From the IMG/VR virus record IMGVR_UViG_3300044731_002337, positions 62,001 through 126,000 of that record: a stretch of DNA of 64,000 bases. One strand, 5' to 3'. Made by a program: the position numbers and the translations under genes. The notes under the pieces are model-generated. The model worked only from the letters and a program-made list of their open reading frames with translations. It was not told the origin of the DNA and did no database searches. Shown here piece by piece: positions 41 through 47,937 of the stretch (its first letter is position 1; the number at the start of each line of letters is the position of its first letter).

Positions 41-791
41 TCACAAGAAGTCATCAAGCGCGTGTAAAAGCCGATAATCGCATAAAGGTGATTGTCTCAA
101 TGTGATGATGGCTTTAAGACGATGGGCTGATTTGAAGGCCGCCTACAATAACTTAATACCGTAAAAAAAATGAAAAAGAAAAAGTAGTACATGATCATAT
201 TGAAGGGAAGTTTGATGAAGAAAATTGGTCGCTGAGGGTAAAATCCATGCCATGTGTAATAAATCAAGGCGTGTAAGAAGATGATGTAAGAGTAATGAAA
301 AATCTTCCGGATAATATGTATCAGTATGATTGACTACAATTCCATATCGTCCACCTAAGAAACTATGAATAACGAAAAAAGGACAAGGTTCATTAAGAAA
401 AAATACCTTGAAGAAGATCACCAGAATGAAGAGTGATGTGTGATGTGCGACGAAATGTTAATAGAGGATAGACAAGAAGTTGGTGTAGTTTCAAGTCGCG
501 CAGATAAATGTGTTGAAGAGATTCTTTAGAGTGAGTGGCAACGTAATTGTAAAGGGCGTTAGTAAGGTCTTGACTATGTTGTGTAGCATAGTCTGGTAAA
601 GGTTCAGGTTGACAACATTTCAAATAAATGGCGGTAACAAATTCTTGAATGCTATACTTGGTAAGTAGTTCATTATTCCCAAAATGGATGAATTGGAATT
701 CACGATAAACATGAATGTCTAGCTTCACCATAAACTTCTCATGTTCTACTGCGAAAAAAAGTTCCGAACACACATCAAAGAAGTGAAACAT
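41..791 (-). CDS. Hypothetical protein, predicted 3 exons (791..407, 354..191, 142..41), about 216 aa
   Basis: ORFs 393..875 (from Met 791) and 143..421 join in frame across a 52-nt GT..AG intron (355..406). A 48-nt GT..AG intron (143..190) leads to a 33-codon open exon ending TGA at 41. TTTCCG motif lies 44 nt upstream of ATG 791. Confidence 0.55.
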
Positions 792-860
792 GGTTTTTGA
801 AACATAAACCCAAAAAAAAAGTAAGTTGAGACATCGGAAAGAAAAAAAAAGGAGAAGAAG

Positions 861-1097
861 ATGTCGGGAATGCAAATTTTTGTCAAGACGTTAACTGGGA
901 AAACCATTACATTGGATGTGGATTCAGCGGATACTGTTGCATCGATAAAGCAAAAAATTCAAGATAAGGAAGGGATTCCACCTGACCAACAGAGATTGAT
1001 ATTTGCAGGGAAACAATTGGAAGATGAACGTACTCTTGCCGATTACAATATTCAGAAGGAGTCGACTCTCCATCTAGTATTACGTTTACGAGGCTAA
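861..1097 (+). CDS. UBI: Ubiquitin variant ending LRLRG (lacks Gly76), with MSG N-terminal extension
   Basis: [17 protein letters not shown]...[41 protein letters not shown]; DNA reads tta cga ggc taa. Confidence 0.97.
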
Positions 1098-2435
1098 TTT
1101 GCCTACAAGACTTGAAATAAAAAGTAATCCATAAATTGGTAAAATGGTCCATAAATAACTATTGTCCGTGTGGATTGGCTTTGCACCTTGTTCATTCGTA
1201 GAGGTATTATAATCATTCGTAGAGGTATCTTGTAGTTTCTTACGACGACGAGGTAGTGGGTTTTGATTATTCGTAGAGGTATCTTGTGGTCTTTGAACAG
1301 AATTTGGTCTTGTTTGTGGTCTGTTGTTGTCGTCAAGCCTTGTTTGTGGTGCATGAGAATCACGTTCAATCACCTTCATATCCTTTTCTGCAATTCTCTG
1401 TTCTATGGCGAAGATTTTGGTAAATTCTTCGAAAAAAATGGTATAATTAGAACTTTTTTTGTTCAAATCTGAGTAGATAATGGTGTCAAAGTAGTTGGAA
1501 TACTGTTCAAGCATTTCCCTAATGATTCTCGCCATGAGTGCGCGGTATCTATCTTGTCGTTCTATTTTGCCATCAAACCAAGCAAATGCGCCACATCCAA
1601 TAGGACCAATAAAAAAATGTTTTGTACGTCGTGCTATAGCGGTGAGAAATATGGTAGTCCACATATCGACAATAGCCCATCTCGTTTCCTGTGTAACACA
1701 GCCTTTTTGGCGTTCGTCAAATTGACCCATTTTCACAACATAATCGATATAAGGTTTTTTATCATGAGCGAAGCATGGTGCAGCTGCAGCAATCATGGGT
1801 AGTTTCATAATAGGGTTTTCCGGATCTAAATGAAGGTGAGTCTTGTTTTTACCTTGGTATTCATACTTTCCATATACAGTCACATTAGGACTTACAATAC
1901 ATCTTTTAAAAGGAATAAACTTACGACTATTTGCATACACTGCCTTTTCAAAGTCTTGTTCATGATACAGTCCTTCACGCTGAATAAACTCTTTAGCGTT
2001 ATGTAATGAATAATTGTAGTTAGAACGTCGAAATAAATCTTCTTCTTGTGCGCTAGCTCCTCGACGATAACCTCCACCGACCTGATACGAATTTGCAAAG
2101 TTCAACACCAAACAATCCTCTTGCTTTGCGTTGGGGTTATTTCGTAGAAAGTCATTCACGACCTCAAATGTATCCCCTTCATACATTATAAATCTAGTGC
2201 CTGGCGCTTCTCGTTTACCATGCGGCTTTTCATATGTTTGTTTAGTATAAGGTTCGATAAGGTAGATTTTATCGTCGCGTTGCTGTAAATCATAGATATA
2301 GTATTCCTCACATCCCGTGAGTTCCATATTTGTGTCAACATATCGTGAAATGGCGGTTGATTCTCTTCCATGCTCGTCTACTTCTTCATAGTCTTGTTTA
2401 AAGCCGTGAAGCTTAATATTAAACGATTCAGGCAT
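1086..2435 (-). CDS. Microbial-type PARG / DUF2263 (TIGR02452)-like macrodomain protein with C-terminal hydrophobic anchor
   Basis: [30 protein letters not shown] matches the GGG-x7-QEE macrodomain-PARG signature. Hydrophobic C-terminus [17 protein letters not shown]. Likely start Met 2435, after an A-rich tract. Confidence 0.75.
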
Positions 2436-2491
2436 TCTCACCTTTTTTTTCTTATGGTGAGTTCCGATAACTTTGTGGGTATAGAAAAAGG

Positions 2492-4078
2492 GTGCAGATG
2501 ATACTGTGGGGTGCAAGTCAGTGGAAGTCGACCAGACCTCGAGCGAATGATCGTTATGTTATTGCGTATGAAAACGGCCTGTGGCGAAATGAGATTTACA
2601 TGTCTCCAGAAGGGCAAGTCGCATTGAATGAACAATATCCATGGGTAGACAAGATACGACCAACCATTTCTTTACCCATCAACTTGGAACATACCTTTTC
2701 TGTGATGGAGCGTTCATTGAATACTTTTTTGGAAAATCACGCGCAGACACCTGTAATCAATTCCATTGGAGTTTATGAGCCAAGTGTGGATAAGTTTTTA
2801 ACCTATTTACCAATGAAGCATTTATCCAAACCAAAAAAGGAACACTTGGTTTGTGGTGGCATTATCGTGGGCGCACCAAATACTGGGAGAACCACAAGCT
2901 TATTGCGATTTGTGCAAGGAAGAGGCAAGAGTTTGGTAATTTTGCCTACGTCGGATCGAGAGTTGTTACGTTATTTGGGGTATAATTTTTCAGTGTCATG
3001 GGATAATGAAATGGTGATTATGACGCCAAAAATGGTGAAGCGACATTGGCATGTATTGCAGAATATGGAGTGGCATCATATTGTGATGGATCAATGTTAC
3101 GTGGGCGGTTCATCATGGAAGACAAAATGTGTATGGATCGTATCGAATGACATGTCGCAAGTGAATGAGTGGTGTGAAGTGTTTCAATTGGATGCGGCGT
3201 TTGGAATTACCTTGGATCGATATTTGATGCAACATGCATTGGGAAGTTATGTGGTGTATCTTTGTGGTAAACGTCATCAACGTCACAATTGGCAACTACT
3301 ACCATGTCATTCCGTGATGAAGGATGATTATCCATTATCCTTGGTATTTCGTACAGTCACTCCTGTCGCCTGGTTATTTGCCCTGGAATATCATGAGGTG
3401 GATGAATATGAGTTTCGTAAAGAGTTGAATGGTATTACGTATGAAGTACAAGAGGAAGATACCATGGAAACGGAGTGCATGTTATGTAATGAAGTATCAA
3501 AGGATGTGGTAAATAATCGGGTATGTGAACATTGGATGTGTGGACCTTGCATGTACAAGATTGCGATCAAGTTTGGCAAGTGTCCTTTTTGTACCAAGTC
3601 TTATGATTCGGATGGATACCATGGACGGATGGGACCTCATATACCAACTCAACCTGAACGTCACGTTACCTATGATAAGACACTATTATTTTCCACCATT
3701 CAAGGTGTCGTAGGTCCAGTCGTGATTGTGGTGGATGTCCAAGAAGTACATGAACTCTACATCTTTATGCAATACATGTTGGAAGGACGAAAAGTCGTTG
3801 TAAATGACATTGGGGATATCATGTTAATTACCCCTCGAATACTACGTGAATTGCGACATGCGTTGAAGCCTTCCTTGGTGATTTGTTTAACGTTAAGCAT
3901 GGATATGTTATTTACACTGGAGTTTTACTTTCAATGTACGGTGTCATTTGTAGCGCCTGAACAAAGTTTATCTTCCGTGTTGATTCAACTCCATAATCAT
4001 AACAAGCTATTTGATATCAACAATCACGTTTTGCCTTCGGATATTCAATTATGGAAACTATTTAAACATCAATTTTAA
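2492..4078 (+). CDS. RING-finger protein with degenerate SNF2/RAD5-like helicase remnant
   Basis: C3HC4 RING: CMLC...VCEHWMCGPC...KCPFC. Decayed motif I (GGIIVGAPNTGRTT) and motif II (WHHIVMDQ). Confidence 0.6.
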   Translation: MQMILWGASQWKSTRPRANDRYVIAYENGLWRNEIYMSPEGQVALNEQYPWVDKIRPTISLPINLEHTFSVMERSLNTFLENHAQTPVINSIGVYEPSVDKFLTYLPMKHLSKPKKEHLVCGGIIVGAPNTGRTTSLLRFVQGRGKSLVILPTSDRELLRYLGYNFSVSWDNEMVIMTPKMVKRHWHVLQNMEWHHIVMDQCYVGGSSWKTKCVWIVSNDMSQVNEWCEVFQLDAAFGITLDRYLMQHALGSYVVYLCGKRHQRHNWQLLPCHSVMKDDYPLSLVFRTVTPVAWLFALEYHEVDEYEFRKELNGITYEVQEEDTMETECMLCNEVSKDVVNNRVCEHWMCGPCMYKIAIKFGKCPFCTKSYDSDGYHGRMGPHIPTQPERHVTYDKTLLFSTIQGVVGPVVIVVDVQEVHELYIFMQYMLEGRKVVVNDIGDIMLITPRILRELRHALKPSLVICLTLSMDMLFTLEFYFQCTVSFVAPEQSLSSVLIQLHNHNKLFDINNHVLPSDIQLWKLFKHQF

Positions 4079-4121
4079 ATTTGAAATTTTATTTCGTTTT
4101 TGTTTTTTTTTTGGTTTTCCG

Positions 4122-5231
4122 ATGGGCTTAGGGGGTAAAAGTGAAAAGTGCAAATTCCCAAAAAGACACAAAATGCAACGTTCCTTTACTTGTGGATCCG
4201 AAACGATGGGTGATCGAGTCAAGCAAATCATACCAAGAAGAGTGTTCATGTCTGGTAAAGTGACACCGGAAATCATCAAGTATTTGTCTCATCCCAAGTA
4301 TTCTGAAATTTTGTTTTCGTATCCTCCTTACAATCAATGTGATGAATTGGTTCAAGGATTGGAGTGCTGTGTCAAAAATGTTAAGGAACCTTTTTATACC
4401 ATTTCTCATCACGATACGATTGCCAAGTTGGTTCTTGATCCACAATTTGCGTCCTTTCGTCGGTCTGCTGGGATGAAGGAATTGAAGAGGGAAATGGATT
4501 TGACGGTCTTACTTCGGGCAACTGGAAATGATGGGAGGGATGGAAAAGTGGGCAAGATTGTTGCGTTGCGAGAGTTTTTGAAGTTGAAGGGGTATAAGGA
4601 GCATGCTGATTGCATCAAGGTGTATCAAGAGTACATGTCCAACATTCCAAAAGAAGTCACGGTAGATCTCAAGACGTGCAGTGAATGGCAATCGACCATT
4701 CCTGGAATTCATGCCGGGTTTCGCGACATGCTCGAGTATGATGACATTTTGGGTGTGTTTGGTCCTGGTCGAATTACGGTGGCAAAGTTGGTGGAAATGA
4801 AATTCTTGAATGGGAATGAACCGGAAATCAAGTCTACGTTGTCATGGTTGGCCAAAACATTTATTATCATTCGAGTACCTGGTTCGATGGTGGATTTGCT
4901 CAACTTTTTGAGAGCAATATATTCCACGACCAAGTTTGCAAATCTTTCCATGGAGGAGTTGATTGCCAAGATTATGGCGGATAAGTTTGTGCTTCCGGAT
5001 GATGCCTGGGTTCCAGATGAAGTGTTTGCGGATGGTGAAGTGGATGATGATTTGGCCATTCTACTTCGTCTCTTGGTGTCCAAACGTGAATTGATTCTTA
5101 CGTTGCAAGTACCATTGGATGCGCCATCGAGTGTCTTGGTGTTTTATGATCAGCTACCGAATACCAAGGTGACGAAAGTGTTTGATTCCAACTCCAAAAA
5201 TCTGGACAAGATTCTAGCCAAGGGTTATTAG
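4122..5231 (+). CDS. Hypothetical protein (start 4122 or 4173)
   Basis: Long ORF with globular composition. GGTTTTCCG at 4113..4121 is 52 nt before ATG 4173. Confidence 0.6.
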   Translation: MGLGGKSEKCKFPKRHKMQRSFTCGSETMGDRVKQIIPRRVFMSGKVTPEIIKYLSHPKYSEILFSYPPYNQCDELVQGLECCVKNVKEPFYTISHHDTIAKLVLDPQFASFRRSAGMKELKREMDLTVLLRATGNDGRDGKVGKIVALREFLKLKGYKEHADCIKVYQEYMSNIPKEVTVDLKTCSEWQSTIPGIHAGFRDMLEYDDILGVFGPGRITVAKLVEMKFLNGNEPEIKSTLSWLAKTFIIIRVPGSMVDLLNFLRAIYSTTKFANLSMEELIAKIMADKFVLPDDAWVPDEVFADGEVDDDLAILLRLLVSKRELILTLQVPLDAPSSVLVFYDQLPNTKVTKVFDSNSKNLDKILAKGY

Positions 5232-5246
5232 ATACTAAAAACACCA

Positions 5247-7031: not shown

Positions 7032-7073
7032 TCTTTTTTTTATTTCTATGGGAGAGAAAAAACAATTTTTTTT

Positions 7074-7489: not shown

Positions 7490-8524
7490 TTATGAAACAT
7501 ATGGTGTGAGAAAAGTAATGCAATTATGTTGTCCAAAGCGTTGAGCATGACTAAGATATTGTTGAAATGCATGACATCCATGTTCTATCATGTATTGTAC
7601 ACAGTGTACATGTCCATGAGAAATAGCAGCAAGACAATCTACTTCAGAGATAAAGCATCCCTTTTGATGTATATAACGTAAACAATCTAAATGTCCATGT
7701 CTTGCGGCATAAAAAGTGAGTAACGCGTTCCAATTATAATTATGTTCCATGAGATAGGTCAATACGTGTAAATGGCCATTTGCGGCGGCATACAAGGATG
7801 TGATATAGCCGTCGACAGCACATCCTTCACTAATTAAGTATTGTAAGCATTCTAGCCAACCAGCTGCAGCAGCATAAGCACATAGAATGGTGTTTCCAGT
7901 ATGTCCTTTAGTTTTGAGAAATTGTAAGCACTGGATGACCTTGGATTCATTTACAGGTACACGACCCAATTTCCCATTAATACATTGTTCGTTCATTCGG
8001 TAGCATATTCCTTGATCATTGCAACATTCACATATAGGTCCCTCTTGATAAGCATAATTTAGGATGTCTATACTTCCGTGAATCATTGCTAACCATGTTA
8101 CGGAATAGTGGTGCGGTATCCTTGGAATTGCTAAAAAGTCGTGCTGGTGTTGGAATAATTTGCAACCTAATTCCAATGCCTTGATGTAGGCTGGTAAATG
8201 GTTACGTTTGATTGACATGTAAACAATATTTGTATTTGTCTTGAACTTCTTGGGGATTATCTCACAATCATTGTCTAGTAAACGGCAAAAGGAAGTAAAT
8301 GTGGAATATTTATCAAACACGGCCTGCACTAAAGGAATGTCTAGGTACCTATCCAGTTCCTGTAACTTCTTTCGTTGCGATGAAGAAAACTTTTTAGTAT
8401 GGTACTTGCTAAAAAATGTCTTGAGTAATTTTTTTTCATGATTAGAAAGTGTTGGCATGTCTCGTATAGTGATAAGTTTATCTTCGCATGCAACATACAT
8501 GGGACTATATTTGCCAAACTCCAT
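7490..8524 (-). CDS. Ankyrin-repeat protein (giant-virus type)
   Basis: Repeats CAYAAAAGWLECLQYL, YAAANGHLHVLTYL, AARHGHLDCLRYI, AISHGHVHCVQYM. Likely start Met 8524. Confidence 0.8.
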   Translation of the reverse strand: MEFGKYSPMYVACEDKLITIRDMPTLSNHEKKLLKTFFSKYHTKKFSSSQRKKLQELDRYLDIPLVQAVFDKYSTFTSFCRLLDNDCEIIPKKFKTNTNIVYMSIKRNHLPAYIKALELGCKLFQHQHDFLAIPRIPHHYSVTWLAMIHGSIDILNYAYQEGPICECCNDQGICYRMNEQCINGKLGRVPVNESKVIQCLQFLKTKGHTGNTILCAYAAAAGWLECLQYLISEGCAVDGYITSLYAAANGHLHVLTYLMEHNYNWNALLTFYAARHGHLDCLRYIHQKGCFISEVDCLAAISHGHVHCVQYMIEHGCHAFQQYLSHAQRFGQHNCITFLTPYVS

Positions 8525-8668
8525 TTGTTGGTTTGTTTTATTTTTGTTTTGTTTATTCAAGTTGGTTTTGTAAAGCGCATGAAAAGAGATGTTCATTCCG
8601 AGATACGGTCGATAAATTGTGGGATTTGGCGAAGAGCGTGATTGCTAAATGTCCAATGTCTTGTCATA

Positions 8669-9099
8669 TCACCTTGTTTGTTCAAGGCGAAAAAAAGTGA
8701 ATATAGTTCCACCTTGACCATTGAATTCATGCAATAGCTGTTGATCGACTCGGTATACTACTTCTGATTTGAGTAGTATAGCAAGGCATTCTGTACAATT
8801 GTTGTGCATTGCCATGTGAAGTGTTTCCACTGGAACGAAGTAGTTTATGACGACCTGAATGTGTACATGCAGCTCTCCAAAAATCACATCCAACCAGTAC
8901 TTGTAACTATAATAATAATACAATGAGGAAAAACATGTGTTACCCTATGAGGTGGAATGGGATGCCTCTGTAAATATTCCAACATGTAGTCCCACGCATT
9001 TTCGTAGCAAAGTTCGAGAATGGGTTTTTCTTTTTCCATTTCCATCTTGTCAATTTGGATGGCTAATCCCCAACTAGTGACGTGATGCATAGTCTCCAT
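8669..9099 (-). CDS. Small ankyrin-like protein, predicted 2 exons (9099..8944, 8899..8669)
   Basis: Overlapping ORFs in different frames join via a 44-nt GTAACA..CAAG intron (8900..8943): PPHR|YWLD. LHMAMHNNCTECLAILL is ankyrin-like. Confidence 0.5.
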
Positions 9100-9189
9100 T
9101 TCCTAAAAAATTTGATCCCATGTTTGGTGTCTTGGATGGAACATGGGGCTGACCCGGAAAAAAATAATTAGCCATTAAAAGAAAAAGAG

Positions 9190-9867
9190 ATGGGTACTAC
9201 AAATTCAGTTGATCAAAAATATGGAAAACTAAGTAATGGGAAAGATAACAGCTATCGGGTACCATCGAAATCAAGCCTACATCATAATGATACTACCGAA
9301 GAAGTCTTGGATTTGAAAAAAGTTAATATATATACGTTAGCTACACGACCACAAACAAACGGAGTAACAGAGCTTACAGTATATAATGTGTCAGAAGAGA
9401 CAATGTCACTTAGTCCAGAATTTATTATAGAAAATGATGGTGTGATCAAGTGTAATATACCATTGTATGAAGGCAAACCAATGAAGTTTACATCACAAGG
9501 CATATATAATAGTCAAGGTGATAGGATTCGTACACCTCGATACCCGGATTTTGTAACCAAGGTAATTATGTTGAGTAAAAAGCATGATCGAAATATATGG
9601 CATTATAAGGCAGTTCCAAGGGCGATAATAGTGTATATGCCTATATTGGATTATGATTTTGGTATAACATTGTATCGTAATGGGGATGAAAATCGAAATT
9701 GGGGACCATTCTTTGTTGGATTATACCGTGGTATCATTTCAAAAAGCTCAACCGAACATTATCATCCACAAACAGATCCATTAGCTCGTACAGCCACTAA
9801 TCCCTATTTTGATCGAAAAGCTTTTAAATACATGCTTGAATTTGCTAAGGATCCACCTGAGACATGA
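9190..9867 (+). CDS. Hypothetical protein
   Basis: 225-aa ORF with A-rich leader, begins MGT; no family recognised. Confidence 0.6.
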   Translation: MGTTNSVDQKYGKLSNGKDNSYRVPSKSSLHHNDTTEEVLDLKKVNIYTLATRPQTNGVTELTVYNVSEETMSLSPEFIIENDGVIKCNIPLYEGKPMKFTSQGIYNSQGDRIRTPRYPDFVTKVIMLSKKHDRNIWHYKAVPRAIIVYMPILDYDFGITLYRNGDENRNWGPFFVGLYRGIISKSSTEHYHPQTDPLARTATNPYFDRKAFKYMLEFAKDPPET

Positions 9868-10150
9868 TCCTTGAATATTCTGGGTTACGACTAAAGCTGG
9901 TTTCGAGCATGGCTTCCTTATTGATAGGGTAGTTAAGAGTAAGTAGGAATTGTAGACATTCCATGGCATCCCATCCAATCGCCAAAGCAATGGCTCGATG
10001 AGTACCGCGATATCCTAGGGAATGTAAGGTCTTCACCATGTCGTAACGATTCAATGTAATAGCATAATCAAAGTGATGAGGTGTAATTTTGTATTGACGA
10101 TGATATTTGGATACAGCTTCACAGTTATTATCAATTATGGCTTGTAACAT
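9845..10150 (-). CDS. Small ankyrin-like protein
   Basis: FDYAITLNRYDMVKTLHSLGY and AIALAIGWDAMECLQFLL resemble degenerate ankyrin repeats. Likely start Met 10150. Confidence 0.5.
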   Translation of the reverse strand: MLQAIIDNNCEAVSKYHRQYKITPHHFDYAITLNRYDMVKTLHSLGYRGTHRAIALAIGWDAMECLQFLLTLNYPINKEAMLETSFSRNPEYSRIMSQVDP

Positions 10151-10207
10151 TCCGATAACTAATTTGATGTGATTTCTTTTTGTTTGATTGATTGATTGAT
10201 TGAGTTG

Positions 10208-10802
10208 ATGGCTGAAAGGAAACGTGTGTGGAAGCATTCGGATCCAAAGAAGGAAACGAAGAAGAAGAAGAGAAGGAAGATAGAGGAGGCAAAGATTCCA
10301 ATGGAAAAGGGGGAGATTTATTCGGATGGAAATTGTTTGCGTAATGGTTATCCTGATGCAAAAGCGGGAACAGGAGTTGCTGCTATATTGAGTGATGGAA
10401 CATTGTTTGCATTGGGTTTAAAATTACCTGGAGTGAAGCAAACAAATAATCGGGCAGAACTATTAGGTCTTTTACTAAGTATGTGTATGGCAGATGATCA
10501 AGGTAAAACGAAAAGAAATGTAATGTGCTGATTTATTTTATTTTCTTTTTTGTGTAGTGGAAACCATGATTGTGTCGGATTCGTTATTATCGATTCAATT
10601 GGTAACGGGGGAAGCAAATCCAAAAGAAAATATCGATTTGGTGGAATCATGTCGAACTATGTGGAAATATAAGCCCAAAGTTTCGTTTCAATGGGTCAAA
10701 GGTCATGAAGATCATAAAGGAAATTTATTGGCAGACGAATTAGCGGATGAAGTTATCAGAGGTTCAGAACGTATTGTGCATCATGAACCCAAGGAACCAT
10801 AA
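10208..10802 (+). CDS. rnhA: Ribonuclease HI, 2 exons (10208..10502, 10558..10802)
   Basis: Catalytic motifs YSDG, TNNRAEL, SDS, WVKGH..GN..AD.LA are split over two ORFs and rejoined by a 55-nt phase-1 GT..AG intron. Confidence 0.9.
10503..10557 (+). other. Spliceosomal-type intron in RNase H (55 nt)
   Basis: CAAG|GTAAAA...GCTGATTTATTTTATTTTCTTTTTTGTGTAG|TG; removal restores the frame. Confidence 0.85.
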
Positions 10803-10819: not shown

Positions 10820-11545
10820 TTACTTATGTAACTTCTCGTTCATTCGAAGAGGTAACTTCTCGTTCATTCGAAGAGGTAACTTCTCGTTCATTCGAAGAGG
10901 TAACTTCTCGTTCATTCGAAGAGGTAAACTATTCTTCTTCTTTTTCTTCTTAGGTATGGTTGCTTTTGGGTCTTTACGTTTTCGTTTTTTGGTGTTTGGG
11001 GTCTTTTTCTGGTTAGGTATGGTTTCCTGTTGTTGGTCTCCATGATTTCGTTTTTTGGTGGTGGGATCATAGTATTTTGTTTTGATGGCTTTCAATTCAT
11101 CTGGAGAAGGGATACAGGTGATTTCGAGTTCTTGTTTGAGTTTTTCAATAGAAGTGATTTGTCGTAATTGGATACTACAGTTGATGATGCAGAGATTGGT
11201 CATACGTTCATCGCCTAAATAATTGGCAGAGCATAACATTTCGTTTAGTTTTTTGAGTGGAAATTGGGAGACCCATTGTAAATAGTTGCTGGGTATCATA
11301 TTTTTCAGAGTTTTTACATCATAGTGAGCAGGCTTCACAATGACATAAGGCTGTTGTTGGTGAAGTTTCCAAAATTCATAGGCGTGAAGCAAGTATTCCT
11401 TCTCTAGCATGGGTAAATGAATGGTCCTAACATCTTGATCACAACTTAGTGAAGCTTCTAAAAAACTGGATTGTTGTAGTAATTCCACATCGAGTTGTGG
11501 AACTTCTTGATCGCCTTTACAAATAATAGTTATCACTTTACTCAT
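10820..11545 (-). CDS. Skp1-like protein with basic, repeat-containing tail
   Basis: BTB/POZ-like N-terminus, then LNEMLCSANYLGDERMTNLCIINCS..ITSIEKLK (Skp1 ANYL motif). Tail has 4x LPLRMNEK. Confidence 0.75.
   Translation of the reverse strand: MSKVITIICKGDQEVPQLDVELLQQSSFLEASLSCDQDVRTIHLPMLEKEYLLHAYEFWKLHQQQPYVIVKPAHYDVKTLKNMIPSNYLQWVSQFPLKKLNEMLCSANYLGDERMTNLCIINCSIQLRQITSIEKLKQELEITCIPSPDELKAIKTKYYDPTTKKRNHGDQQQETIPNQKKTPNTKKRKRKDPKATIPKKKKKKNSLPLRMNEKLPLRMNEKLPLRMNEKLPLRMNEKLHK
10828..10923. repeat. Perfect tandem repeat, 24 bp x4
   Basis: GTAACTTCTCGTTCATTCGAAGAG four times without spacers; encodes LPLRMNEK on the minus strand. Confidence 0.95.
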
Positions 11546-11758: not shown

Positions 11759-13242
11759 ATGGAAGACTCACAGTGGATTGACCAAGATGACATTGCCAAA
11801 CCAACATTGGATACATCTCAACCAGAGTTTGAAAAACCTACAACACCTAGCAATGAATCGGATGGGGAGGAAGAAGAAGAAGAAGAAGAAGAATTTGAAG
11901 CTCCTAGTGGGATGAATGTGGATGAGAATGATCCAAAGCCATTATCTCATCGAATTAACCATTTACAAGCGCCTTCAACCAAGATTGTACATGCAACACA
12001 AGATGAGACACCAATGATAATTGAAGAGGAAATCCATGAGAATGGAAAGGCGGAGGTGGAAGTGGTGGAGGAGGAGAAGGAAAAGCCTCAAGAAGAAGAT
12101 GTGGTGAAGCAAGTCAATGAAGTTCATTTGAATAAGCTGAAGCGAAAGAGCAAGGAAAAGAGCAAGGAAAAGGTGAAAAAACCCAAGAAACATAAGAGGG
12201 ATAAGGAGGCAAGATTTGACTTGTTGGAAAAGAGATTGGATGTGATGGAGAAAACGAGTCAAGCATCGGTGAAACATATGAATAAGACGAATGAGCAATT
12301 GGAGAAACTCATGGGGTTAATGACGCAATTATGTCACAAAATGATTGATGGACCAATGCGAGTTGCCGCATCCACATCAGCATCATCAGTACCAGCGATT
12401 CAACATGACGTGCCTATATCCCATTTGACTGTATCCAAGGAGCAATTGGTGGCATTGATGGCGACGATATTCAAGTTTGGATTTTGTTCCAAGACTGTAT
12501 GGTTGGAAGCATCCAAGGTCAAGGAGGTTAAGACCAATCAACCGCCTCGTGTGGGTCATCAAACATTGGAAGTGGTGATTAGTGCAAGACTATTATTTGT
12601 ATTGGCTTCCAAGTTTTGTTCTGGTGCATCCAATGTATTTGGTCTCAAGGTAAAAACTATGCAAAAAAAAATCATGTGACTAAGAATGTGTGTGTATAGA
12701 CATTTAAGAGGAAAATTACGGTCAAGGTGGCATCAGAATGGTTTTTAGCCATGTTTGGAGAGACATTGGATGAAAATCATACACTGGTTAAGATTCCAGT
12801 GCCTCGGTTTCTCGAGTGTTGTGTAGCAGTTGCCAAGTCGGCTGCTAAAGAAGTCAATGTGGTATTTACAAGGCTGGACAAGATTTCCAACATGTTCAAT
12901 ATGTTTCACAAGATTCAAGGAGAAACATCAATGGAGGGTACTGATGCCTACAAGAAGCGACAATTGAAGGCTGTGACCATTTCAAGCTTTGATTATGTTG
13001 ACCCCAAGATTATTGCCCTTTTGCGAAGTACCCGAATTGAGGAATACAGTCCTGAATGTGGATTTCGCAATTTCATTTTCGGTCAAAAAGTGGTCCCTAT
13101 GAAGTTGGCTAATATTCAGCAAGATGGTGAAAAGATTACTTTGACTGCATTTTGGGGAATCAACATTTCGGTCGATGATGATGACAAGGTCGAAGAAGCC
13201 GAAGAAGGTGGTGATGAAACCAATTCTGATGAAGAAGAATAA
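11759..13242 (+). CDS. Hypothetical acidic/basic protein, 2 exons (11759..12649, 12700..13242), about 477 aa
   Basis: Two ORFs join in phase 0 across a 50-nt AAG|GTAAAA..GTATAG intron (12650..12699): FGLK|TFKRKITVKVASEW. Confidence 0.7.
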
Positions 13243-15986: not shown

Positions 15987-16027
15987 CTATTTAGGCTGTA
16001 CCGAAAGACTCTCCTAATGTCGACATC
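15983..16027 (+). repeat. 45-bp dispersed element, copy A, starting at the stop codon of the 15006 gene
   Basis: TTAACTATTTAGGCTGTACCGAAAGACTCTCCTAATGTCGACATC; 40/45 identical to the reverse complement of 50639..50683. Confidence 0.85.
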
Positions 16028-16114
16028 CATGTTGACTCTCCTAATGTCGACATCCATGTTGACTCTCCTAATGTCGACATCCATGTTGACTCTCCTAATG
16101 TCGACATCCATGTT
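16007..16114. repeat. Perfect intergenic tandem repeat, 27 bp x4
   Basis: GACTCTCCTAATGTCGACATCCATGTT four times without spacers. Confidence 0.95.
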
Positions 16115-16224
16115 AAATAACATATTTTATTATAGAATAATAGGTTCTGCATTGCATAGTTTAAACATAATATTTTTTGATAAATTTCAAGGCTTTCTCA
16201 TTCGAAGTCCAATTTGAATTTTTT

Positions 16225-16285: not shown

Positions 16286-17536
16286 ATGCGTGCAAAAAGG
16301 TCAATTCAAGAGGAGAAGAAGAGGAAGAGAATGGAAGAGGAAGGTAGTGGTGGTGGCCAAGAAGTCAAACAGAAGATTAAGAAGCCACGTATAAGTCGTG
16401 TAGAACGAAAGAGGAGAAGAGAGGAAAAGGAAGAATTGGCGAGACAAGTACGATTTGCCAAACAACAAGAAAAAATTGCAGCCCAAATTCGGAAAAAGCA
16501 AGAATATGATCTAAAGTTGCAAGAGATTCGGTATAATGAATTTTTATTTGAAGTGGAACCTGGAACTTTTGGATTACCTAGTATGGATGATGACAAGCCA
16601 ACACGATATCGTGATCGGAGAAAGGTTGGACTATTTGGACTACTCACATGTCTACTGTATGTGATATGTGTATAGGAAGCGGATTCTACTCAATGTCATC
16701 ATTGCTACAAGAGGGTTGCTGCTCATATCAAGTGTAGTCAAGTGTTTTACTGTGAGCATTGCATTTCTAGTTTTTATCCGGACAAGACGTCATGTCCTCA
16801 TTGCGATGGAACGTGTCGATGTATCAAGTGTTATTCACATGGATATTGTTCGTTTGGATGGTATTTGGAGGTGATCAAGGCGCATTATGCAAGGCCAAGT
16901 CGTGGAGATTATGGAGCTTGGTTGTTTGATTTGGTGAATGCCCTGTTGAGTTCAGTGGAGGCTTCTGACAATGTCAAGTTGATTCGTCAGCCTGAGAATC
17001 CGTTCAAGGTGTTGCGTGAACATATTATGGGCGAGGATGATGATCAGGGTGGCAAGTCCAAGAAATTGGTATCCAAGGTTAGCAAGTATCGAAGGCTACA
17101 GAATTCGGTCTCGTGTCATTTGTGCCATAAGGCGGAACCTGTGGAGATGATGCGATGTGATATGCCCAAGTGTGGTTTATTATTTTGTAAGCGCCTATTG
17201 ATGAGTCAGCATGGAGATGAATATAGTGGGGTAGACTTTTCAACCGAGCTATTTGAGTGTCCTCGATGTCGCAAAATCTGCAAATGTACCAAGTGCAGAA
17301 CAAATATGGCCAAGGATGTCTTGGTAACGGATCAAAAGACGAAAAGACAATGGATTTTCTATTATCTCATGAGTATTCATCAATGTCGATTGGATCCGAT
17401 ATTGTATCCCATTGTACAAGAGCAATTTGGAACGGGGAAGCTTGTTGCTAAACTCTCAACTTATATTATTCGTATGTTTGCTCCTCCAAGTTCATCCGAG
17501 GAACCAGTTTCTTCCGATCATGAATCTTTGGTATAA
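16286..17536 (+). CDS. Protein with two zf-4CXXC_R1 (CDCA7-like) zinc fingers and basic N-terminus, 2 exons (16286..16624, 16676..17536), about 399 aa
   Basis: A 51-nt phase-0 intron (16625..16675) fuses the ORFs and completes finger 1 (CHHC..C..YCEHC..CPHCDGTCRCIKC). Finger 2 is CHLC..C..C..FC..CPRCRKICKCTKC. Confidence 0.65.
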
Positions 17537-17554
17537 ATTTGCTGTAAAGAAGGA

Positions 17555-19053
<1,499 letters not shown>

Positions 19054-21719: not shown

Positions 21720-22892
21720 ATGAGAGAGGTAGTAAGTGTACATGTTGGAGAGGCGGGGATACATATGGGGGATAAGATATGGGATACATTGCGATGTGAT
21801 GGACAGCATGAGACAATGTTTCGAGAGACGAATCGATCTGTAATGGTACCACGAGCAGTGTTTGTTGATTTGGATCCTTATGTAGTGGAAGAGATAAGAG
21901 GTAAGTATGATCCGTATTATGTATTGGGGGGTAAAGAGGATGCGTCTTGTAATTTTGCGAGGGGATATTGTACTGTGGGCCGAATGATGATTGATGTCTT
22001 ATGGGATCGTGTATGTCATATGATGGAGGCTTGTGATAGTATGCAAGGATTATTCTTAACGCATGCAGTCGCTGGAGGAACAGGAGGTGGAGTAAGTAGT
22101 TTATTAAGTGAGAAATTGGATGATCATTATCCCCGTTTAGTGAAAATGGGGATTCAAGTGATTCCTGCACCACAGATCTCGAGTGCTGTTGTAGAACCTT
22201 ATAATACCATGTTATGTCAGCATTATATGATGAATCAGATTCAGACAAAGATTATGGTGGACAATGAAGCGCTGTATGATTTGAGTATGATGAGGCGTGG
22301 AATTGAGAAGCCTGGGTATGCAGATTTGAATGAGATGGTAGCTCAAATGGTAATGTCTATGGATGTGTCGTTACAAGAGTATTATACGAATTTGGTACCT
22401 TATCCTCGGATTCATTATATGACGGCAGCGTATGCCCCCATGACGGAGAATATCTTTGCTACTCCATCGCCGTACGAAATGACGCGTGATGTCTTGAATT
22501 TACAGAACCGAATGGTAAAAGTGTATGGCAATCCAGGTAAATGGATTTCAGCGTATGTTATGTATCGTGGCGGTATAACAAGTCGTGAAGTGAATGAGGC
22601 ATTGACTAGGTATCGAGAAAAGAAACATGTGTTACCGTTTGTGGATTGGAGTCCTTTAGGTATGAAGTGTGGATTGAGACCAGAAGATAAACAAAGAGGT
22701 GTGGGGTTATTGGTGAATGATACAGTGATTAAGGAATTTATAGCAAGAAATAATAAGAAATTCGATATCATGTGGGATAAAGGTGCCTTTATGCATTGGT
22801 ATTTACAGGAGGGTTTAGAAATAAGTGAATTTATGGAGGCCAGGGAAAATATGGCGGCATTAGAAATGGATTACTTGGAAATTGTAAGCTAA
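21720..22892 (+). CDS. TUBA: Divergent, loop-deleted alpha-tubulin-like protein (390 aa)
   Basis: MREVVSVHVG, PRAVFVDLDP, GKEDASCNFARG, AGGTGGG, SAVVEPYN, DNEALYD, TNLVPYPRIH, FVDWSP, EARENMAALEMDY. These match alpha-type rather than beta-type diagnostic motifs. Confidence 0.95.
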   Translation: MREVVSVHVGEAGIHMGDKIWDTLRCDGQHETMFRETNRSVMVPRAVFVDLDPYVVEEIRGKYDPYYVLGGKEDASCNFARGYCTVGRMMIDVLWDRVCHMMEACDSMQGLFLTHAVAGGTGGGVSSLLSEKLDDHYPRLVKMGIQVIPAPQISSAVVEPYNTMLCQHYMMNQIQTKIMVDNEALYDLSMMRRGIEKPGYADLNEMVAQMVMSMDVSLQEYYTNLVPYPRIHYMTAAYAPMTENIFATPSPYEMTRDVLNLQNRMVKVYGNPGKWISAYVMYRGGITSREVNEALTRYREKKHVLPFVDWSPLGMKCGLRPEDKQRGVGLLVNDTVIKEFIARNNKKFDIMWDKGAFMHWYLQEGLEISEFMEARENMAALEMDYLEIVS

Positions 22893-26653: not shown

Positions 26654-26776
26654 CTAATCAGTAGGAGTAGTAACTTGGCGTCGAGCAGGAATATAAATTG
26701 TCATATACCATATATGGATCATGATGGAAGCAATAATCAATAATAAGGCAATGGCTACTGTAATGAGACTGATCAT
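26654..26776 (-). CDS. Small single-TM peptide (40 aa), below the ORF-track cutoff
   Basis: MISLITVAIALLLIIASIMIHIWYMTIYIPARRQVTTPTD-stop fills the gap between co-oriented genes. Confidence 0.45.
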   Translation of the reverse strand: MISLITVAIALLLIIASIMIHIWYMTIYIPARRQVTTPTD

Positions 26777-26783
26777 AGACTTT

Positions 26784-27264
26784 TCAAAAGTGGTTGTCAA
26801 CATTCTTTTTTGATGTTAGTTGTCTTTTTTTTTCTACTTGCGGTGTATAGTTTTTTACATGAAGATACATGGCATTATCCAAAGTTGATTGATATTTGAA
26901 CCCAAAACGAGTGTAAAGGGTAGAATGGAAAGGTAACACATTGTCCAAACAAATGGTATGAATGCGTTGACGTTTTGCTTTCAAGATGAGATCATGTAAC
27001 ATTTGTGAGGCAACACCAATGCCTCTATCATTTCGTGGAACATATAGGAATGCAATGTACCTGTGTAAAATACAATTCAATGTGGGCAAAAAATAAAAGA
27101 ATTACAAACATACCAAGAATGACGACGATAATGTCTTACGTCCATATAGAATTATCCGATGTGCTGATTTCAGAAAGTGGTAAATCGGGACATACTTCAA
27201 ACGAATGAATGAATACATTGTATGGTGTTATGTGAATTGTTCTAGACATGAAGTGTGGATTCAT
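26784..27264 (-). CDS. GNAT-family acetyltransferase, 2 exons (27264..27140, 27060..26784), about 133 aa
   Basis: YIAFLYV...DRGIGVASQML (motif A) and LYTRFGF. A 79-nt GTAAGA..TACACAG phase-2 intron (27061..27139) supplies the missing N-terminus. Confidence 0.7.
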
Positions 27265-27530
27265 ACATCTAGGTAAGAAATGATTTTTTTGTATTGTCTC
27301 ATTTGTGTAGTATGTGTGTAACCATTAAAGGGGGAGTTATGTGGGTGAATGGAGAAAAGATGGAGGATGAAGAAGACATTATGGATACATTTCAAATACA
27401 TCCAAGACTCTTATTATGGGAGAGATATGTAAATACACCAAAAGATCTACTACAACGTATACAACAGTTTGGCATGTATCCAGGTAAGACAAATGATGAA
27501 CATACGTTTATAACTTTTGGCGTAGAGTAA
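27205..27530 (+). CDS. Small hypothetical protein, possibly 2 exons (27205..27272, 27311..27530)
   Basis: Strong 38-nt AG|GTAAGA..TGTGTAG intron (27273..27310) joins ATG 27205 in frame. Could instead start at 27312. Confidence 0.4.
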
Positions 27531-40606: not shown

Positions 40607-40687
40607 ATATATAATGGTGTGTTCCGATAATGATGTAAATGAGAATGAAGACTTGAGAAAAAAAAAACAACAATAACAAGAAGAAGA

Positions 40688-41614: not shown

Positions 41615-41660
41615 TGATAAAAAAAATTAGGACAATTAAAATAAAATAAAAGAATAAGAC

Positions 41661-41921
41661 ATGGCCAAGGTGACAGTAAAAGATCATACATTAATTCCAA
41701 CCGTATTAGGTTCATTAGGTATGTTGGCAGCTTTTTCATTTACTTTTGCAGCCCAAAGGACATTTGATATTTTGGTAACGGCGGAAGTAAAATGGAAAAA
41801 GTTGATTCTGGTATGGGGATATGCAGCGATTATCTTTGCAGTGGTGATTATAGTGTTATGGCAATATGGTGATCATCCCGAGGATGAAGTGATCATTGAG
41901 GCTAAGAAGGGTGATCAATAA
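41661..41921 (+). CDS. Small two-TM membrane protein
   Basis: Two hydrophobic helices; AATAAA-rich leader. Confidence 0.65.
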   Translation: MAKVTVKDHTLIPTVLGSLGMLAAFSFTFAAQRTFDILVTAEVKWKKLILVWGYAAIIFAVVIIVLWQYGDHPEDEVIIEAKKGDQ

Positions 41922-41962
41922 ATAAAGAAAAAAAAAGAAGGAAGATAAAAAAAAAATTTTTA

Positions 41963-43453: not shown

Positions 43454-43488
43454 AGAAAAAAAAATAAATGGTAAGTAGATAAAAAAAA

Positions 43489-43968: not shown

Positions 43969-44016
43969 AATGTATTATTATGATTTGAAAAAAAAAGGGT
44001 TGTGAAAAGAAAAGAA

Positions 44017-45183: not shown

Positions 45184-45185
45184 CG

Positions 45186-45974
45186 TCACCATCTATTTCC
45201 GTATCCATAATCATTATAACCTCGCAATGCACGTGTAGCGTTTCGAGAAATAAAACCTCCTAAACCATTGAATAATCCATTGTCTTTTTCACGACCTTTC
45301 TTGGTGAAGCGTTTGATTCGACCACCATTATTGTGACGAATCAGTTCGATAATATCTGATTTCATTCCGGGGTCAAGTCGAGATTGATTAACGGCATGTA
45401 TTTGTTGGAAGGGGTGATAAAGTTTTGCGACGATGATACCAAAGATTGTATCCTTATTCTTGAGCGCGGCTGGTAATTGGTTCAATTCATTGGCAATCTT
45501 TTCTACCATTTCATCACTTGATCGAATGTTGTTACGATTGTATTGATCAATGCTATCTCCAAATCGTGTAGTATAAAATATAATGAGACAAGAGGCAAGG
45601 CTACCAATGATCCACATAGCCCATACTTGTTCCTTTTCTTTGGCTGTGAATGGCACGGTATTATCATTGTCGGCACGTGTGGTGGGCGCCCGCTGAACAT
45701 ATCCTCCTGCTACACCCAATAGGATGACAATAACACCAATACAAAAGACATAGATGTAGTTTCTGGATTCGCTGAAATCATCACGGTCGCTCTTTGAGAC
45801 CATAATAGCTAATCCAAGGAAGGTGATGGCGAATAAGATACTGAAAAAGAAAAAAGTACCAGAGGAACTAGAATTTTCAATAATGGCGACAAGGCCAAAG
45901 ATGAGAATATAAACACCCATGCATGCAGCAAAGCGAGAAAATGGTTTAGCGAATAAATCACCAAATCCACCCAT
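45186..45974 (-). CDS. Multi-pass membrane protein
   Basis: Four hydrophobic helices in the N-terminal half. Confidence 0.7.
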   Translation of the reverse strand: MGGFGDLFAKPFSRFAACMGVYILIFGLVAIIENSSSSGTFFFFSILFAITFLGLAIMVSKSDRDDFSESRNYIYVFCIGVIVILLGVAGGYVQRAPTTRADNDNTVPFTAKEKEQVWAMWIIGSLASCLIIFYTTRFGDSIDQYNRNNIRSSDEMVEKIANELNQLPAALKNKDTIFGIIVAKLYHPFQQIHAVNQSRLDPGMKSDIIELIRHNNGGRIKRFTKKGREKDNGLFNGLGGFISRNATRALRGYNDYGYGNRW

Positions 45975-46042
45975 GACCTTTTTTTTTTTCTTTTAGTTCT
46001 TTTAGTTTTTTTGTCTTATAGTTTCCATTTGTAATTTTTTTT

Positions 46043-46870
46043 CTATCCCATTGTGAGCCAATTTGCATTGTAGATGCCATCCGTCTTGGACTTGAAATTA
46101 TCAGCAATGGTCTTATTAATCTTCACTTTCACATCACTTGCATCCAAAATACCTTGTCCAGCTTGACTAGTACATCGTTCAATGACGCGTGTATTTTCAG
46201 CCCAGGCTAATTGCCAAGTACAATAAAGAGCGAACACTAACTCATACAATAACACCAATATTATGCCTGACGTATTGGATTGCTTATTGGCCCCATGAAG
46301 GCGTAATATAGTACCTAACACAGCTATGGAACCAACATAAGATCCAGCTCGATACATCCGCGTCTCCCATTTTTGATCTTTTTTAATCATCTTTTCTAAC
46401 GCCCTCCAATCTGACTCATCCATCACTGTTGGATGGTTATGCAAGAGTCTTGAAAAGTCTCGCCATTCACGATAATGGAGCTTCATCAACCAACGACCTG
46501 TAAAGAACCATTTTACCCGATCCCATTTACTAGTATAAGCCTTTTTTTCCTCTCGAATTCCTCCATGTGCTTCCCATTTCTTTTCCAACAGTTTGTTTCG
46601 AATCTCGCTTCGTTTCCACCATTGATAAAGACTTGCGATAATAAGAAGTATGCCAATGATCATAAATACAGCCATAGTATCGACGGGTTTAAAATTGGAT
46701 GAGAAACACCAGATTGATACGGCAACAAAAAGAATACCATACGAAAACATATAATATTGTTCATCACTCATAAAGGTTCTAGCTTTGGAGTAGATATATT
46801 GCATCTCATCACTATCAATATCAACTGATGATGTCGATTTGGACATGTCTTTCTCTGTTTTTTTTCTCAT
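46043..46870 (-). CDS. Multi-pass membrane protein
   Basis: Two pairs of hydrophobic helices separated by a charged loop. Confidence 0.7.
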   Translation of the reverse strand: MRKKTEKDMSKSTSSVDIDSDEMQYIYSKARTFMSDEQYYMFSYGILFVAVSIWCFSSNFKPVDTMAVFMIIGILLIIASLYQWWKRSEIRNKLLEKKWEAHGGIREEKKAYTSKWDRVKWFFTGRWLMKLHYREWRDFSRLLHNHPTVMDESDWRALEKMIKKDQKWETRMYRAGSYVGSIAVLGTILRLHGANKQSNTSGIILVLLYELVFALYCTWQLAWAENTRVIERCTSQAGQGILDASDVKVKINKTIADNFKSKTDGIYNANWLTMG

Positions 46871-46968
46871 AAGGTTATCATTTTATTTTGGGTTACAACA
46901 AGGAAATCCTTTTTTTTTTTCGATTGATAAATGTTCCGATAGAGGGAATAGCTTTAGTCGATTTGGAA

Positions 46969-47937
46969 ATGTCGAAAAAGCGGGCTCGAAGTGAGTTGCC
47001 ATTAGCGGAACATGATTCGACCAAGTTGATTGAGGATACATTGGCGGCCATTGATAAGGCGAATCCAGAAATGTCTGTGCGTTTGAATAGTCTATCCATG
47101 TGGAATACAGTGTTGAAAATCATGACCAAAGCAAGTCCTCAATCCGTGTTTTTCCAATTTACCAAGGATGGTTTAACCATGATTGCATCAAGTAGTAGTT
47201 CCAATACGTGTATTTCCCATTGGAATAAGGATATGTTCCATGTGTACAAGATTACTGAAGAGTTTGCCTTTACAGTGACATCTAAAGAACTAGGTGATTT
47301 TCAAAAGACGATTCCGGTATAATGCATTTATTGTTGTATTGTGTTATTTATGGTGTAAAAATAGACAAGTGGAGGTGAATTGATTATTTCCACGTTGGGT
47401 CATGGTGAGATGGCGGACGATGCTCAAGCGTTTATCATGACGGTGATATCAAGACTTGGACCAGATTATCCAGCAGAAATTGTTGCGCATCGATTGAGTG
47501 TGGGTGATGCAGCTGAATTTGTGATGCCCAAGAATATTGAGTTGTACAATTCATCACCATTGGAAGTCTCTGTGAGTGCCGACTTGTTTAGTGGGACCAT
47601 TACCAAATTATGCCGTGGACATACAGTGGACAAATTGGTGATTCGAATCAATCAAAGTGTCATGTACTTTGAGACCTATAGTGAAGCCAAGACTAAGCCG
47701 GATGCAGTGAGTCAACATCAAATTCAATCTCAAGCCTCCTATCGTGGCGTCTTTCTTCCCGAAACAGTGATGAATGCGGCGAAGAAGGGAATCAATACGC
47801 ATGTTCATCTCAAGTGGATTCAAGACAAGGAGAAGCAAAGTTCTGTACTCACTCTAACTTATGATCTAAGTCCTAGAGAACATGAAATCAATTCACACAT
47901 TAGCTTTTATATTGCCGAAAAAATTGAAGTTGATTAA
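46969..47937 (+). CDS. Divergent PCNA/sliding-clamp-like protein, 2 exons (46969..47316, 47365..47937), about 306 aa
   Basis: A 48-nt phase-0 intron (47317..47364, GTATAA..AAATAG) fuses two ORFs. FQFTKDGLTMIA..F..Y..F.V pattern. C-terminal ISFYIAEKIEVD mirrors PCNA YYLAPKIE. Confidence 0.6.

Follow-up and report, generated by a model that had tools for sequence, protein, structure and literature searches.

Inserts with GT..AG ends in the analyzed window

The stretch of DNA considered here (the window) comprises 64,000 nucleotides (nt), corresponding to bases 62001 to 126000 of a linear, 294,773-bp contig with a guanine-plus-cytosine (GC) content of 38%, catalogued as IMG/VR virus record IMGVR_UViG_3300044731_002337; positions are those of the window unless they are denoted as genome positions, which refer to the whole contig. 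Its genes include those for a bifunctional DHFR-TS, an RNase H, a zinc-finger (4CXXC-like) protein and a PCNA-like sliding clamp, each of which is interrupted by one or two short inserts with GT..AG ends (Table 1). An earlier reading made from the letters alone (the sequence-only reading) had proposed about eleven tiny introns between positions 41 and 47937.

Every one of the eleven intervals has GT at its start and AG at its end when read on a single consistent strand (minus for 143-190, 355-406, 8900-8943 and 27061-27139, and plus for the other seven), and excision connects two open frames in every case. The description of the donors as mostly GTA and of the acceptors as mostly TAG proved accurate (10 and 9 of the 11, respectively). 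Taken alone, however, the GT..AG ends and the joining of frames represent weak evidence, because intergenic spacers are equally short and AT-rich (GC content of 28%, versus 27% in the proposed introns) and GT..AG pairs are ubiquitous. An intron was regarded as verified where the uninterrupted orthologue of a relative aligns over the junction or where a relative carries an intron of different length at the same codon. Unproven intervals were assessed with a hexamer coding model, which was trained on the long open reading frames (ORFs) of the genome and calibrated on length-matched open windows from non-coding frames, the latter being the source of the p values given below. Five of the eleven proposed introns were thus verified by comparison, two are probable, three are possible, and one (27273-27310) was rejected.

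Table 1. Positions of introns, candidate introns and associated features in the window and in the parent genome
Feature	Position	Strand	Properties
Probable intron, ORFan gene	355..406	-	52 nt, phase 1, AAG/GTATTT..CTTAG; exon A 407-791, exon B 191-354
Candidate intron, same gene	143..190	-	48 nt, in frame, CAT/GTACTA..TTGTAG; exon B to 33-codon exon C (41-142)
Candidate intron, ankyrin-like repeat gene	8900..8943	-	44 nt (35 nt with GTT donor); exons 8944-9099, 8669-8899
Intron, RNase H	10503..10557	+	55 nt, phase 1, AAG/GTAAAA..GTGTAG; exons 10208-10502, 10558-10802
Probable intron, ORFan gene	12650..12699	+	50 nt, phase 0, AAG/GTAAAA..GTATAG; exons 11759-12649, 12700-13242
Intron, zinc-finger (4CXXC-like) gene	16625..16675	+	51 nt, phase 0, AAG/GTTGGA..GTATAG; exons 16286-16624, 16676-17536
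DHFR-TS, bifunctional	17555-19053	+	Three exons, 464 amino acids once spliced
Intron, DHFR-TS (TS half)	18329..18386	+	58 nt, phase 0, AAG/GTATTA..ACTAG
Intron, DHFR-TS	18529..18574	+	46 nt, phase 1, CAG/GTAAAA..TATAG; divides a Gly codon
Candidate intron, GNAT gene	27061..27139	-	79 nt, phase 2, GAC/GTAAGA..CACAG; exon 1 27140-27264, GNAT exon 26784-27060
Intron, PCNA-like sliding clamp	47317..47364	+	48 nt, phase 0, CCG/GTATAA..AATAG; exons 46969-47316, 47365-47937
RFC small subunit	genome 61401-61859 (window -599 to -141)	-	Five exons, four introns of 44-48 nt
RPB1 intron	genome 166942-166991	-	50 nt, near 5' end
PolB intron	genome 208527-208568	-	42 nt, GT..AG, stop-free, in frame
Promoter-like element	11645, 13306, 13371, 14951, 16229	+	T-run plus motif
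Promoter-like element	7471	-	T-run plus motif

Introns verified by comparison

The three exons of the DHFR-TS gene were searched one by one against solved structures (PDB). On the plant DHFR-TS chain 8dae_A, they occupy positions up to 330, 331 to 377, 378 (the split codon) and from 379 onward, with nothing missing or extra, and on the TS chain 6k7q they occupy positions up to 86, 87 to 133, 134 and 135 to 292, with no residue lost or added. A contig of a relative (L001), which was found via the adjoining helicase gene, encodes DHFR-TS as a single uninterrupted ORF of 461 amino acids (aa), to which the spliced product of the window is 74% identical with gapless alignment at both junctions; the gene order of L001 (helicase, zinc-finger gene, DHFR-TS, a protein of approximately 900 aa and tubulin) is as in the window. 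As features of the DNA, both DHFR-TS introns are considered certain, and since the L001 orthologue contains neither, they were gained or lost inside the virus clade. This answers in part the earlier question of whether they are inherited or new.

In the RNase H gene, the DG and E motifs lie in exon 1, and the D and C-terminal H..N..AD motifs in exon 2, with each exon matching RNase H1/HI in PDB. In the spliced product, the catalytic Glu and the following catalytic Asp, one on either side of the junction, are spaced 22 residues apart, as in Escherichia coli RNase HI, and the intron is regarded as verified. The claim that excision restores canonical enzyme motifs in DHFR-TS and RNase H was confirmed by the mapping onto PDB chains and by the motif spacing.

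For the zinc-finger gene, two separate genes represented a genuine alternative, as the length of the insert is divisible by three and its sole in-frame stop is the acceptor TAG. Homology, however, reaches the acceptor and covers 117 codons ahead of the first ATG, codons which also score as coding, and L001 harbors a 188-nt GT..AG intron (L001 positions 4155 to 4342) at the identical codon, where it connects different frames. Two separate genes were ruled out by this same-codon intron and by the extent of the homology, and the interval is classed as a verified intron. Exon 1 of the PCNA-like gene yielded a weak match to archaeal PCNA models at N-terminal positions (7 to 81 of 246 to 249), and an exhaustive profile search with exon 2 retrieved an uninterrupted homologue of 313 aa (P0166), to which the spliced product is 45% identical in an end-to-end alignment with a single one-residue gap beside the junction. 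At the same codon, two relatives (L019 and L020) carry GT..AG introns of their own and a third (L021) carries none; the PCNA-like intron is likewise taken as verified from these alignments.

DNA from independent samples retains the inserts. A contig of 1,954 nt, derived from a different sample and study, covers positions 16595 to 18548 with zero differences, the insert at 18329-18386 being unchanged, and further samples match over 12640-13157 and 18383-18600, again with no differences. No intron-less DNA form was present among the independent-sample contigs compared. The sole credible indel variants in the 6 kb compared lie inside introns and were observed in sample X3, namely, an additional A at position 12662 (within 12650-12699) and a 3-nt deletion at position 18533 (within 18529-18574), a pattern which is only suggestive because both variants derive from low-depth contigs.

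Intervals without homologue support

The remaining six intervals have no homologue support; no paralogues of the spliced models were found elsewhere in the genome, and single-protein scans of IMG/VR retrieved no relatives of the ORFan genes. At 12650-12699, the 17 codons from the acceptor to the first ATG score as coding (p of approximately 0.025 against open non-coding windows), and this interval is probably an intron. A protein search with exon 1 of this gene, the size window of which (163 to 520 aa) would miss an unsplit orthologue of 480 to 540 aa, returned only the query itself. The interval at 355-406 is also a probable intron: exon B scores as coding (p of approximately 0.02), and the unspliced form would leave approximately 530 nt empty, versus a contig-wide median intergenic gap of 67 nt. 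Excision of 143-190, a possible intron, merely takes out an in-frame stop; the coding score of exon C corresponds to a p value of approximately 0.16, and no homologue of exon C or its gene was found. Both exons flanking 8900-8943 bear the repeat motif of the neighboring ankyrin-like family and their frames join, although all GT-AG solutions require an unusual AAG acceptor and exon 2 has a coding score p value of approximately 0.15, such that an intron is possible.

The interval at 27061-27139 is a further possible intron. The match of the exon at 26784-27060 to GNAT models begins only at profile position ~78, and the exon lacks a start codon, implying that an upstream exon is needed. The exon 1 put forward appears non-coding (p of approximately 0.35), and neither the other minus-strand frame nor a GTATGT donor at 27113 yielded a combination that is frame compatible with the acceptor. 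The 38-nt interval at 27273-27310 on the plus strand is not an intron. The suggested exon 1 (27207-27272) is outscored by 99.9% of the open non-coding windows and overlaps with the opposite-strand GNAT exon, and the ATG at 27312 (plus strand) opens a 72-codon ORF which scores as coding on its own without an intron; the interval forms part of the 47 nt that separate the divergently oriented GNAT (minus strand) and 72-codon (plus strand) genes. Small, intron-less genes for predicted membrane proteins were also observed in seemingly non-coding gaps, specifically at 26657-26803 (minus strand, 49 aa), sharing approximately 20 nt with the 3' end of the GNAT ORF, and at 41662-41922 (plus strand, 86 aa).

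Introns in core genes elsewhere in the genome

As a tally, "about eleven" is an undercount genome-wide, since four introns in the RFC small-subunit gene, one in RPB1 and one in PolB come in addition. Splicing of the RFC gene restores the YRPKTF, GPPGTGKTS and NASDENGID motifs as well as the Walker B exon, one of the introns splitting GPPGTG/KT, and the last exon begins at RFC profile position 104. In RPB1, the conserved zinc/CPGHFG segment precedes the first ATG of the long ORF, with the intron ahead of this segment; the RPB1 model match starts only at position ~53, such that a 39-codon first exon is required. The PolB gene, in turn, reads as one intact ORF, and ORF-based annotation cannot detect its 42-nt intron. 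At the same codon, two relatives carry introns of 57 nt and 41 nt which contain a stop or shift the frame, another relative carries none, and removal of the 42-nt segment results in a gapless alignment. The converse case is provided by the helicase gene, which contains a 47-nt intron in L001 and none in the window.

The inserts are thus present in the DNA, and their exact removal produces continuous coding sequences for conserved, collinear proteins in the case of DHFR-TS (two introns), RNase H, the zinc-finger gene, the PCNA-like gene, PolB, RFC (four introns) and RPB1. GT..AG ends are shared by the eleven claimed introns, the six additional introns of this genome and seven introns in relatives. 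With positions that are partly shared at 45 to 65% protein identity and partly lineage specific, the introns appear to be a long-standing and dynamic trait of the viral clade.

Across the 16 introns of this genome used for these figures, length ranges from 38 to 79 nt with a median of 48 nt, the typical form is AAG/GTA...TAG, and the mean GC content is 27%, versus 38.6% in coding sequence. The three classes of length modulo 3 are balanced (6/5/5), and all three phases are used. T-rich tracts are common, but the whole intron is AT-rich. The introns display no mutual similarity, the longest string common to the 16 being 13 nt and of low complexity; introners (intron-generating transposons) were ruled out by this lack of intron families of high mutual similarity. 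A scan of the window against Rfam returned no family at gathering score.

Intron density in the window is about 0.1 to 0.16 per kb. A census of ORF joins by GTA..YAG with a codon-usage filter identified 60 loci versus approximately 36 by a control motif, being noisy and missing known introns, and another, in which the hexamer model was applied to coding stretches before the first ATG, identified 230 GT-AG loci versus 185 to 322 for control dinucleotides; the latter brought up the RPB1 intron. As three genome-wide scans performed no better than controls, no total intron count is defensible.

Identity and sampling of the virus

Near-identical DNA is present in lake and freshwater metagenomes from at least 10 studies, and a second assembly of the same virus measures 299,086 bp, approximately 4 kb longer than the contig. 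Genes are densely packed on both strands, ORFs of at least 90 codons that begin with ATG covering 91% of the contig and reaching both of its ends, and inspection of both ends revealed no terminal repeats. All three stop codons are in use (TAA, 164; TGA, 67; TAG, 27), a usage that speaks against hosts in which TAA/TAG or TGA encode amino acids, as is the case in many ciliates.

The genome encodes a candidate A32-type packaging ATPase, which scores 0.98 against Pox_A32 clusters of the Nucleocytoviricota, a D5-like primase-helicase, a family B DNA polymerase (PolB), and the two large subunits of RNA polymerase (RPB1 and RPB2), which were found by hidden Markov model searches; a double-jelly-roll capsid gene was not recovered. 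This combination indicates a nucleocytovirus and not a mirusvirus, the latter identity being ruled out by the A32-type ATPase together with PolB, the PCNA-like gene, RPB1 and RPB2. The relatives of PolB comprise three metagenomic sequences at 63 to 66% identity, a second tier at approximately 30% and, beyond that, cellular polymerases only; the closest PolB outside the small clade of this virus is 31% identical. The virus is an uncultivated, deep-branching member of the Nucleocytoviricota from lake water. Searches of most large ORFs against PHROGs and NCBIfam gave no match, and the ESM Atlas gave no usable result for a 1,256-aa ORFan or for exon A (407-791) of the first gene.

Proposed access to the host spliceosome

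We propose, with good though not complete confidence, that this deep-branching lake giant virus carries in many of its genes very short, U2-type introns, as a consequence of which its pre-mRNAs must meet the host spliceosome. Given the length of the inserts (38 to 79 nt), their GT-AG ends and the lack of a group I, group II or other Rfam family, the spliceosome represents the only known machinery that fits. Removal would occur at the RNA level through the host spliceosome, in or from the nucleus, with viral transcripts gaining access either through a nuclear phase or through the recruitment of nuclear splicing factors. Transcription itself may be performed by the viral polymerase from a promoter-like element, which consists of a run of 8 to 12 T followed by GGATTTTCCGC or GGATTTTCCG[CG] and is located 41 to 57 nt (sometimes approximately 115 nt) upstream of the ATG; about 13 start codons genome-wide are preceded by this element, including those of two intron-bearing genes. 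The message for RPB1 would itself require splicing despite the fact that the virus encodes its own RNA polymerase. A nuclear transcription phase, as earlier suggested, is consequently supported with regard to spliceosome access, which is forced, but not with regard to nuclear transcription, which the possession of RPB1 and RPB2 renders non-compulsory. The further suggestion that intron size may point to the host lineage was not borne out, as size does not identify the host.

A number of observations weigh against this proposal. Three of the eleven proposed introns are unproven and one is wrong. No clear branch-point consensus is apparent, YTRAY-like elements (CTAAC, TTGAT, CTGAT) being present in 7 of the 16 introns and situated within the last 30 nt in five, and splice-site matrices based on nine verified introns give at least as many high scores on reversed-sequence controls, which implies that splice signals alone prove nothing. 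Among the sequencing runs carrying the sequence there is no RNA library and, hence, no junction read. The contig is rated only 55% complete, and host flanks could sit past its ends. Several intron-bearing genes are preceded by a promoter-like motif of viral type, consistent with transcription by the virus's own polymerase, an enzyme which in most giant viruses works in cytoplasmic factories.

A rival possibility, which we consider rather unlikely, is that the contig represents an endogenous or latent giant viral element in a protist genome, the introns of which stem from host gene architecture. The punuivirus of Chlamydomonas offers a precedent, with spliceosomal introns of host-like features in 61 of 506 genes (bioRxiv 10.64898/2026.10.09.758095), and decaying endogenous elements are a listed exception to the intron-poor nature of nucleocytoviruses (PMC12768974); such an origin would also be compatible with a contig that is linear, rated as incomplete and devoid of terminal repeats and with the occurrence of one relative's contig in a very fragmented NCBI assembly (GCA_013558295.1). 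The contig, however, displays neither host-like flanks nor erosion, its ORF coverage continues without a large gap at either end, and its ORFs are intact and conserved with respect to relatives at 45 to 75% identity. Intron positions are, moreover, common to diverged viruses, which points to inheritance in the virus lineage under selection, near-identical sequence recurs across the lake studies mentioned above, and it is core genes of replication and transcription, not a distinct set for latency, that contain the introns. The endogenous element that the sequence-only reading had offered as an option has, accordingly, found no positive support, including at the contig ends, where it had advised a search for host flanks.

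That the inserts are removed or skipped by other means, i.e., by self-splicing, by an archaeal-type endonuclease and ligase or by ribosomal bypassing, is very improbable. While the mechanism is deduced from DNA, and cytoplasmic factories served by the virus's own polymerase would have no spliceosomes, the inserts are too short for group I or II introns, whose catalytic RNA spans a few hundred nt, and they have no Rfam match. The invariant GT..AG ends, the AG/GTA consensus and the use of three phases are hallmarks of spliceosomal introns, and bypassing would not keep GT..AG ends across relatives with unrelated insert sequences. Harder still to credit is an explanation of the breaks as sequencing or assembly indels or pseudogene frameshifts with GT..AG by chance, and for the five verified introns it is already refuted. 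GT and AG are common, loose genome-wide scans yield equal numbers of ORF-joining introns with control dinucleotides, and one other frame break in the window lies at an A10 run, but the inserts measure 38 to 79 nt and not 1 to 2 nt, are present unchanged in independent samples, align gaplessly to intron-less orthologues at the exact codon after removal, and have counterparts of different sequence, each with GT..AG ends, at the same codons in relatives. Indel errors that fuse the ORFs, which had been named as grounds for abandoning the intron model, are thus contradicted, for the verified introns, by both the independent samples and the relatives.

Comparison with known intron-bearing viruses

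Pandoraviruses are the best-documented parallel; they encode RNA polymerase but do not package it, begin in the nucleus and splice 7.5 to 13% of their genes (PMC5995976). The present virus shares with pandoraviruses and Mollivirus its place among the nucleocytoviruses, the possession of RNA polymerase genes and the presence of GT-AG introns in about one gene in ten, from which a nuclear phase is deduced. Unlike pandoraviruses, it belongs to an unrelated lineage with a 38% GC, much smaller genome and also has introns in RPB1, PolB, RFC and the PCNA-like gene; furthermore, its introns are known from DNA and not from transcripts.

Chloroviruses possess few introns only and are not known to have RNA polymerase genes. 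In the present virus, by contrast, introns are frequent, polymerase genes are present, and the PolB intron is 42 nt in length, in frame and stop-free. The presence of a short intron within PolB is a feature shared with PBCV-1 and NY-2A, chloroviruses with a nuclear phase whose PolB gene is interrupted by one short intron of the nuclear type (cited in PMC5995976).

According to a recent survey, nucleocytoviruses are generally without spliceosomal introns, save pandoraviruses, a few chloroviruses and decaying insertions (PMC12768974). The same study described GT-AG introns in the mirusvirus orders Okeanovirales and Styxvirales at 0.18 to 0.2 per kb, with a length peak near 80 nt and positions that differ between close relatives, from which nuclear reproduction was inferred; these intron-rich mirusviruses, which possess an HK97 capsid and terminase, are without PolB, PCNA, RNA polymerase and TFIIS, and their intron richness was tied to polymerase gene loss (PMC12768974). 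The virus described here resembles them as an uncultivated aquatic large DNA virus with canonical GT-AG introns at the density given above, but differs in that it keeps the A32 ATPase, D5-like primase, PolB, RPB1/RPB2 and a PCNA-like gene, and in that its introns are shorter and none encodes an endonuclease. In the punuivirus, which is latent in Chlamydomonas, approximately 12% of genes have host-like introns with a mean length of 176 bp, marking latency genes, and other genes run from a conserved viral promoter (bioRxiv 10.64898/2026.10.09.758095). A conserved promoter-like motif is also present in this virus; in contrast to punuivirus, introns of approximately 48 nt here interrupt genes for replication and transcription, some of which immediately follow the viral-type motif. 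The virus, therefore, represents a new, unrelated lineage with an already known type of intron, the less usual aspects being the tiny size of the introns, their mirusvirus-like density and their location in retained replication and transcription genes.

It is about an even call whether a free-living, deep-branching freshwater nucleocytovirus clade exists that is as intron dense as the intron-rich mirusviruses, keeps the full replication and transcription machinery, contains introns within its own RPB1, PolB, RFC and PCNA-like genes, and has gained and lost its introns in the viral lineage. If this is true, the proposed link between intron richness and polymerase gene loss would be broken, and the viral polymerase would be made obligatorily dependent on host nuclear splicing. 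The virus itself is a counter-example to the survey cited above (PMC12768974), with RPB1, RPB2, PolB, RFC and a PCNA-like gene retained and several of these requiring splicing. The core-gene introns also fix a testable prediction regarding the site of early gene expression, and the shared and lineage-specific positions, together with intron-less orthologues, provide a small natural system for the study of viral intron gain and loss.

There are also consequences for annotation. Prokaryote-style gene calling, the usual practice for giant viruses from metagenomes, splits or truncates at least a tenth of the genes of this virus, and in-frame introns such as that of PolB escape it altogether. Public protein sets (P0001, P0044 and P0165) carry unspliced fragments, including a 185-aa piece of the PCNA-like gene and a 436-aa piece.

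Other features of the window and genome

The window encodes a eukaryote-like tubulin at 21720-22892 (plus strand) with the motifs GGTG[GS]G, KEDAxNNFARGY and VVEPYN. The L001 tubulin (L001 positions 9591 to 10784) is 52% identical to this copy and is matched by Pfam Tubulin and Tubulin_C; a search of the literature on viral tubulin in giant viruses found nothing specific. A kinesin-like motor with the P-loop GSGKTYTM is encoded at genome positions 211946 to 213820 (L007 positions 7946 to 9820), and Pfam Kinesin matches the copy of a relative (L011 positions 217 to 2061). The latter is a 14-kb contig (JACCDN010783585.1 of assembly GCA_013558295.1) with both the kinesin gene and an intron-bearing PolB, and the organism of this assembly could be the host or could represent a contaminated sample.

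The frame break noted above at an A10 run is located at 57793-58110 on the minus strand, where a 390-aa ORF (58031-59203) stops right after the run and an 85-codon startless open stretch continues in a different frame. Two readings are possible, namely, a frameshift at the homopolymer, caused by error or slippage, and an intron of 110 nt (GTAACA..CATAG) at 57998-58107. Perfect four-copy tandem repeats with units of 24 to 27 nt are present at 10828-10927 and 16007-16114, the unit at 10828 being related to that at the start of the contig (genome positions 1 to 110) through the common sequence CTCTTCGAATGAAC. Many metagenome contigs break or diverge at about 15997-16202. Further genes of the window include a ubiquitin gene (861-1097, plus strand), a cluster of ankyrin-like repeat genes (7490-10417, minus strand) and a gene for a 476-aa protein with a TIGR02452-family domain (1086-2516, minus strand).

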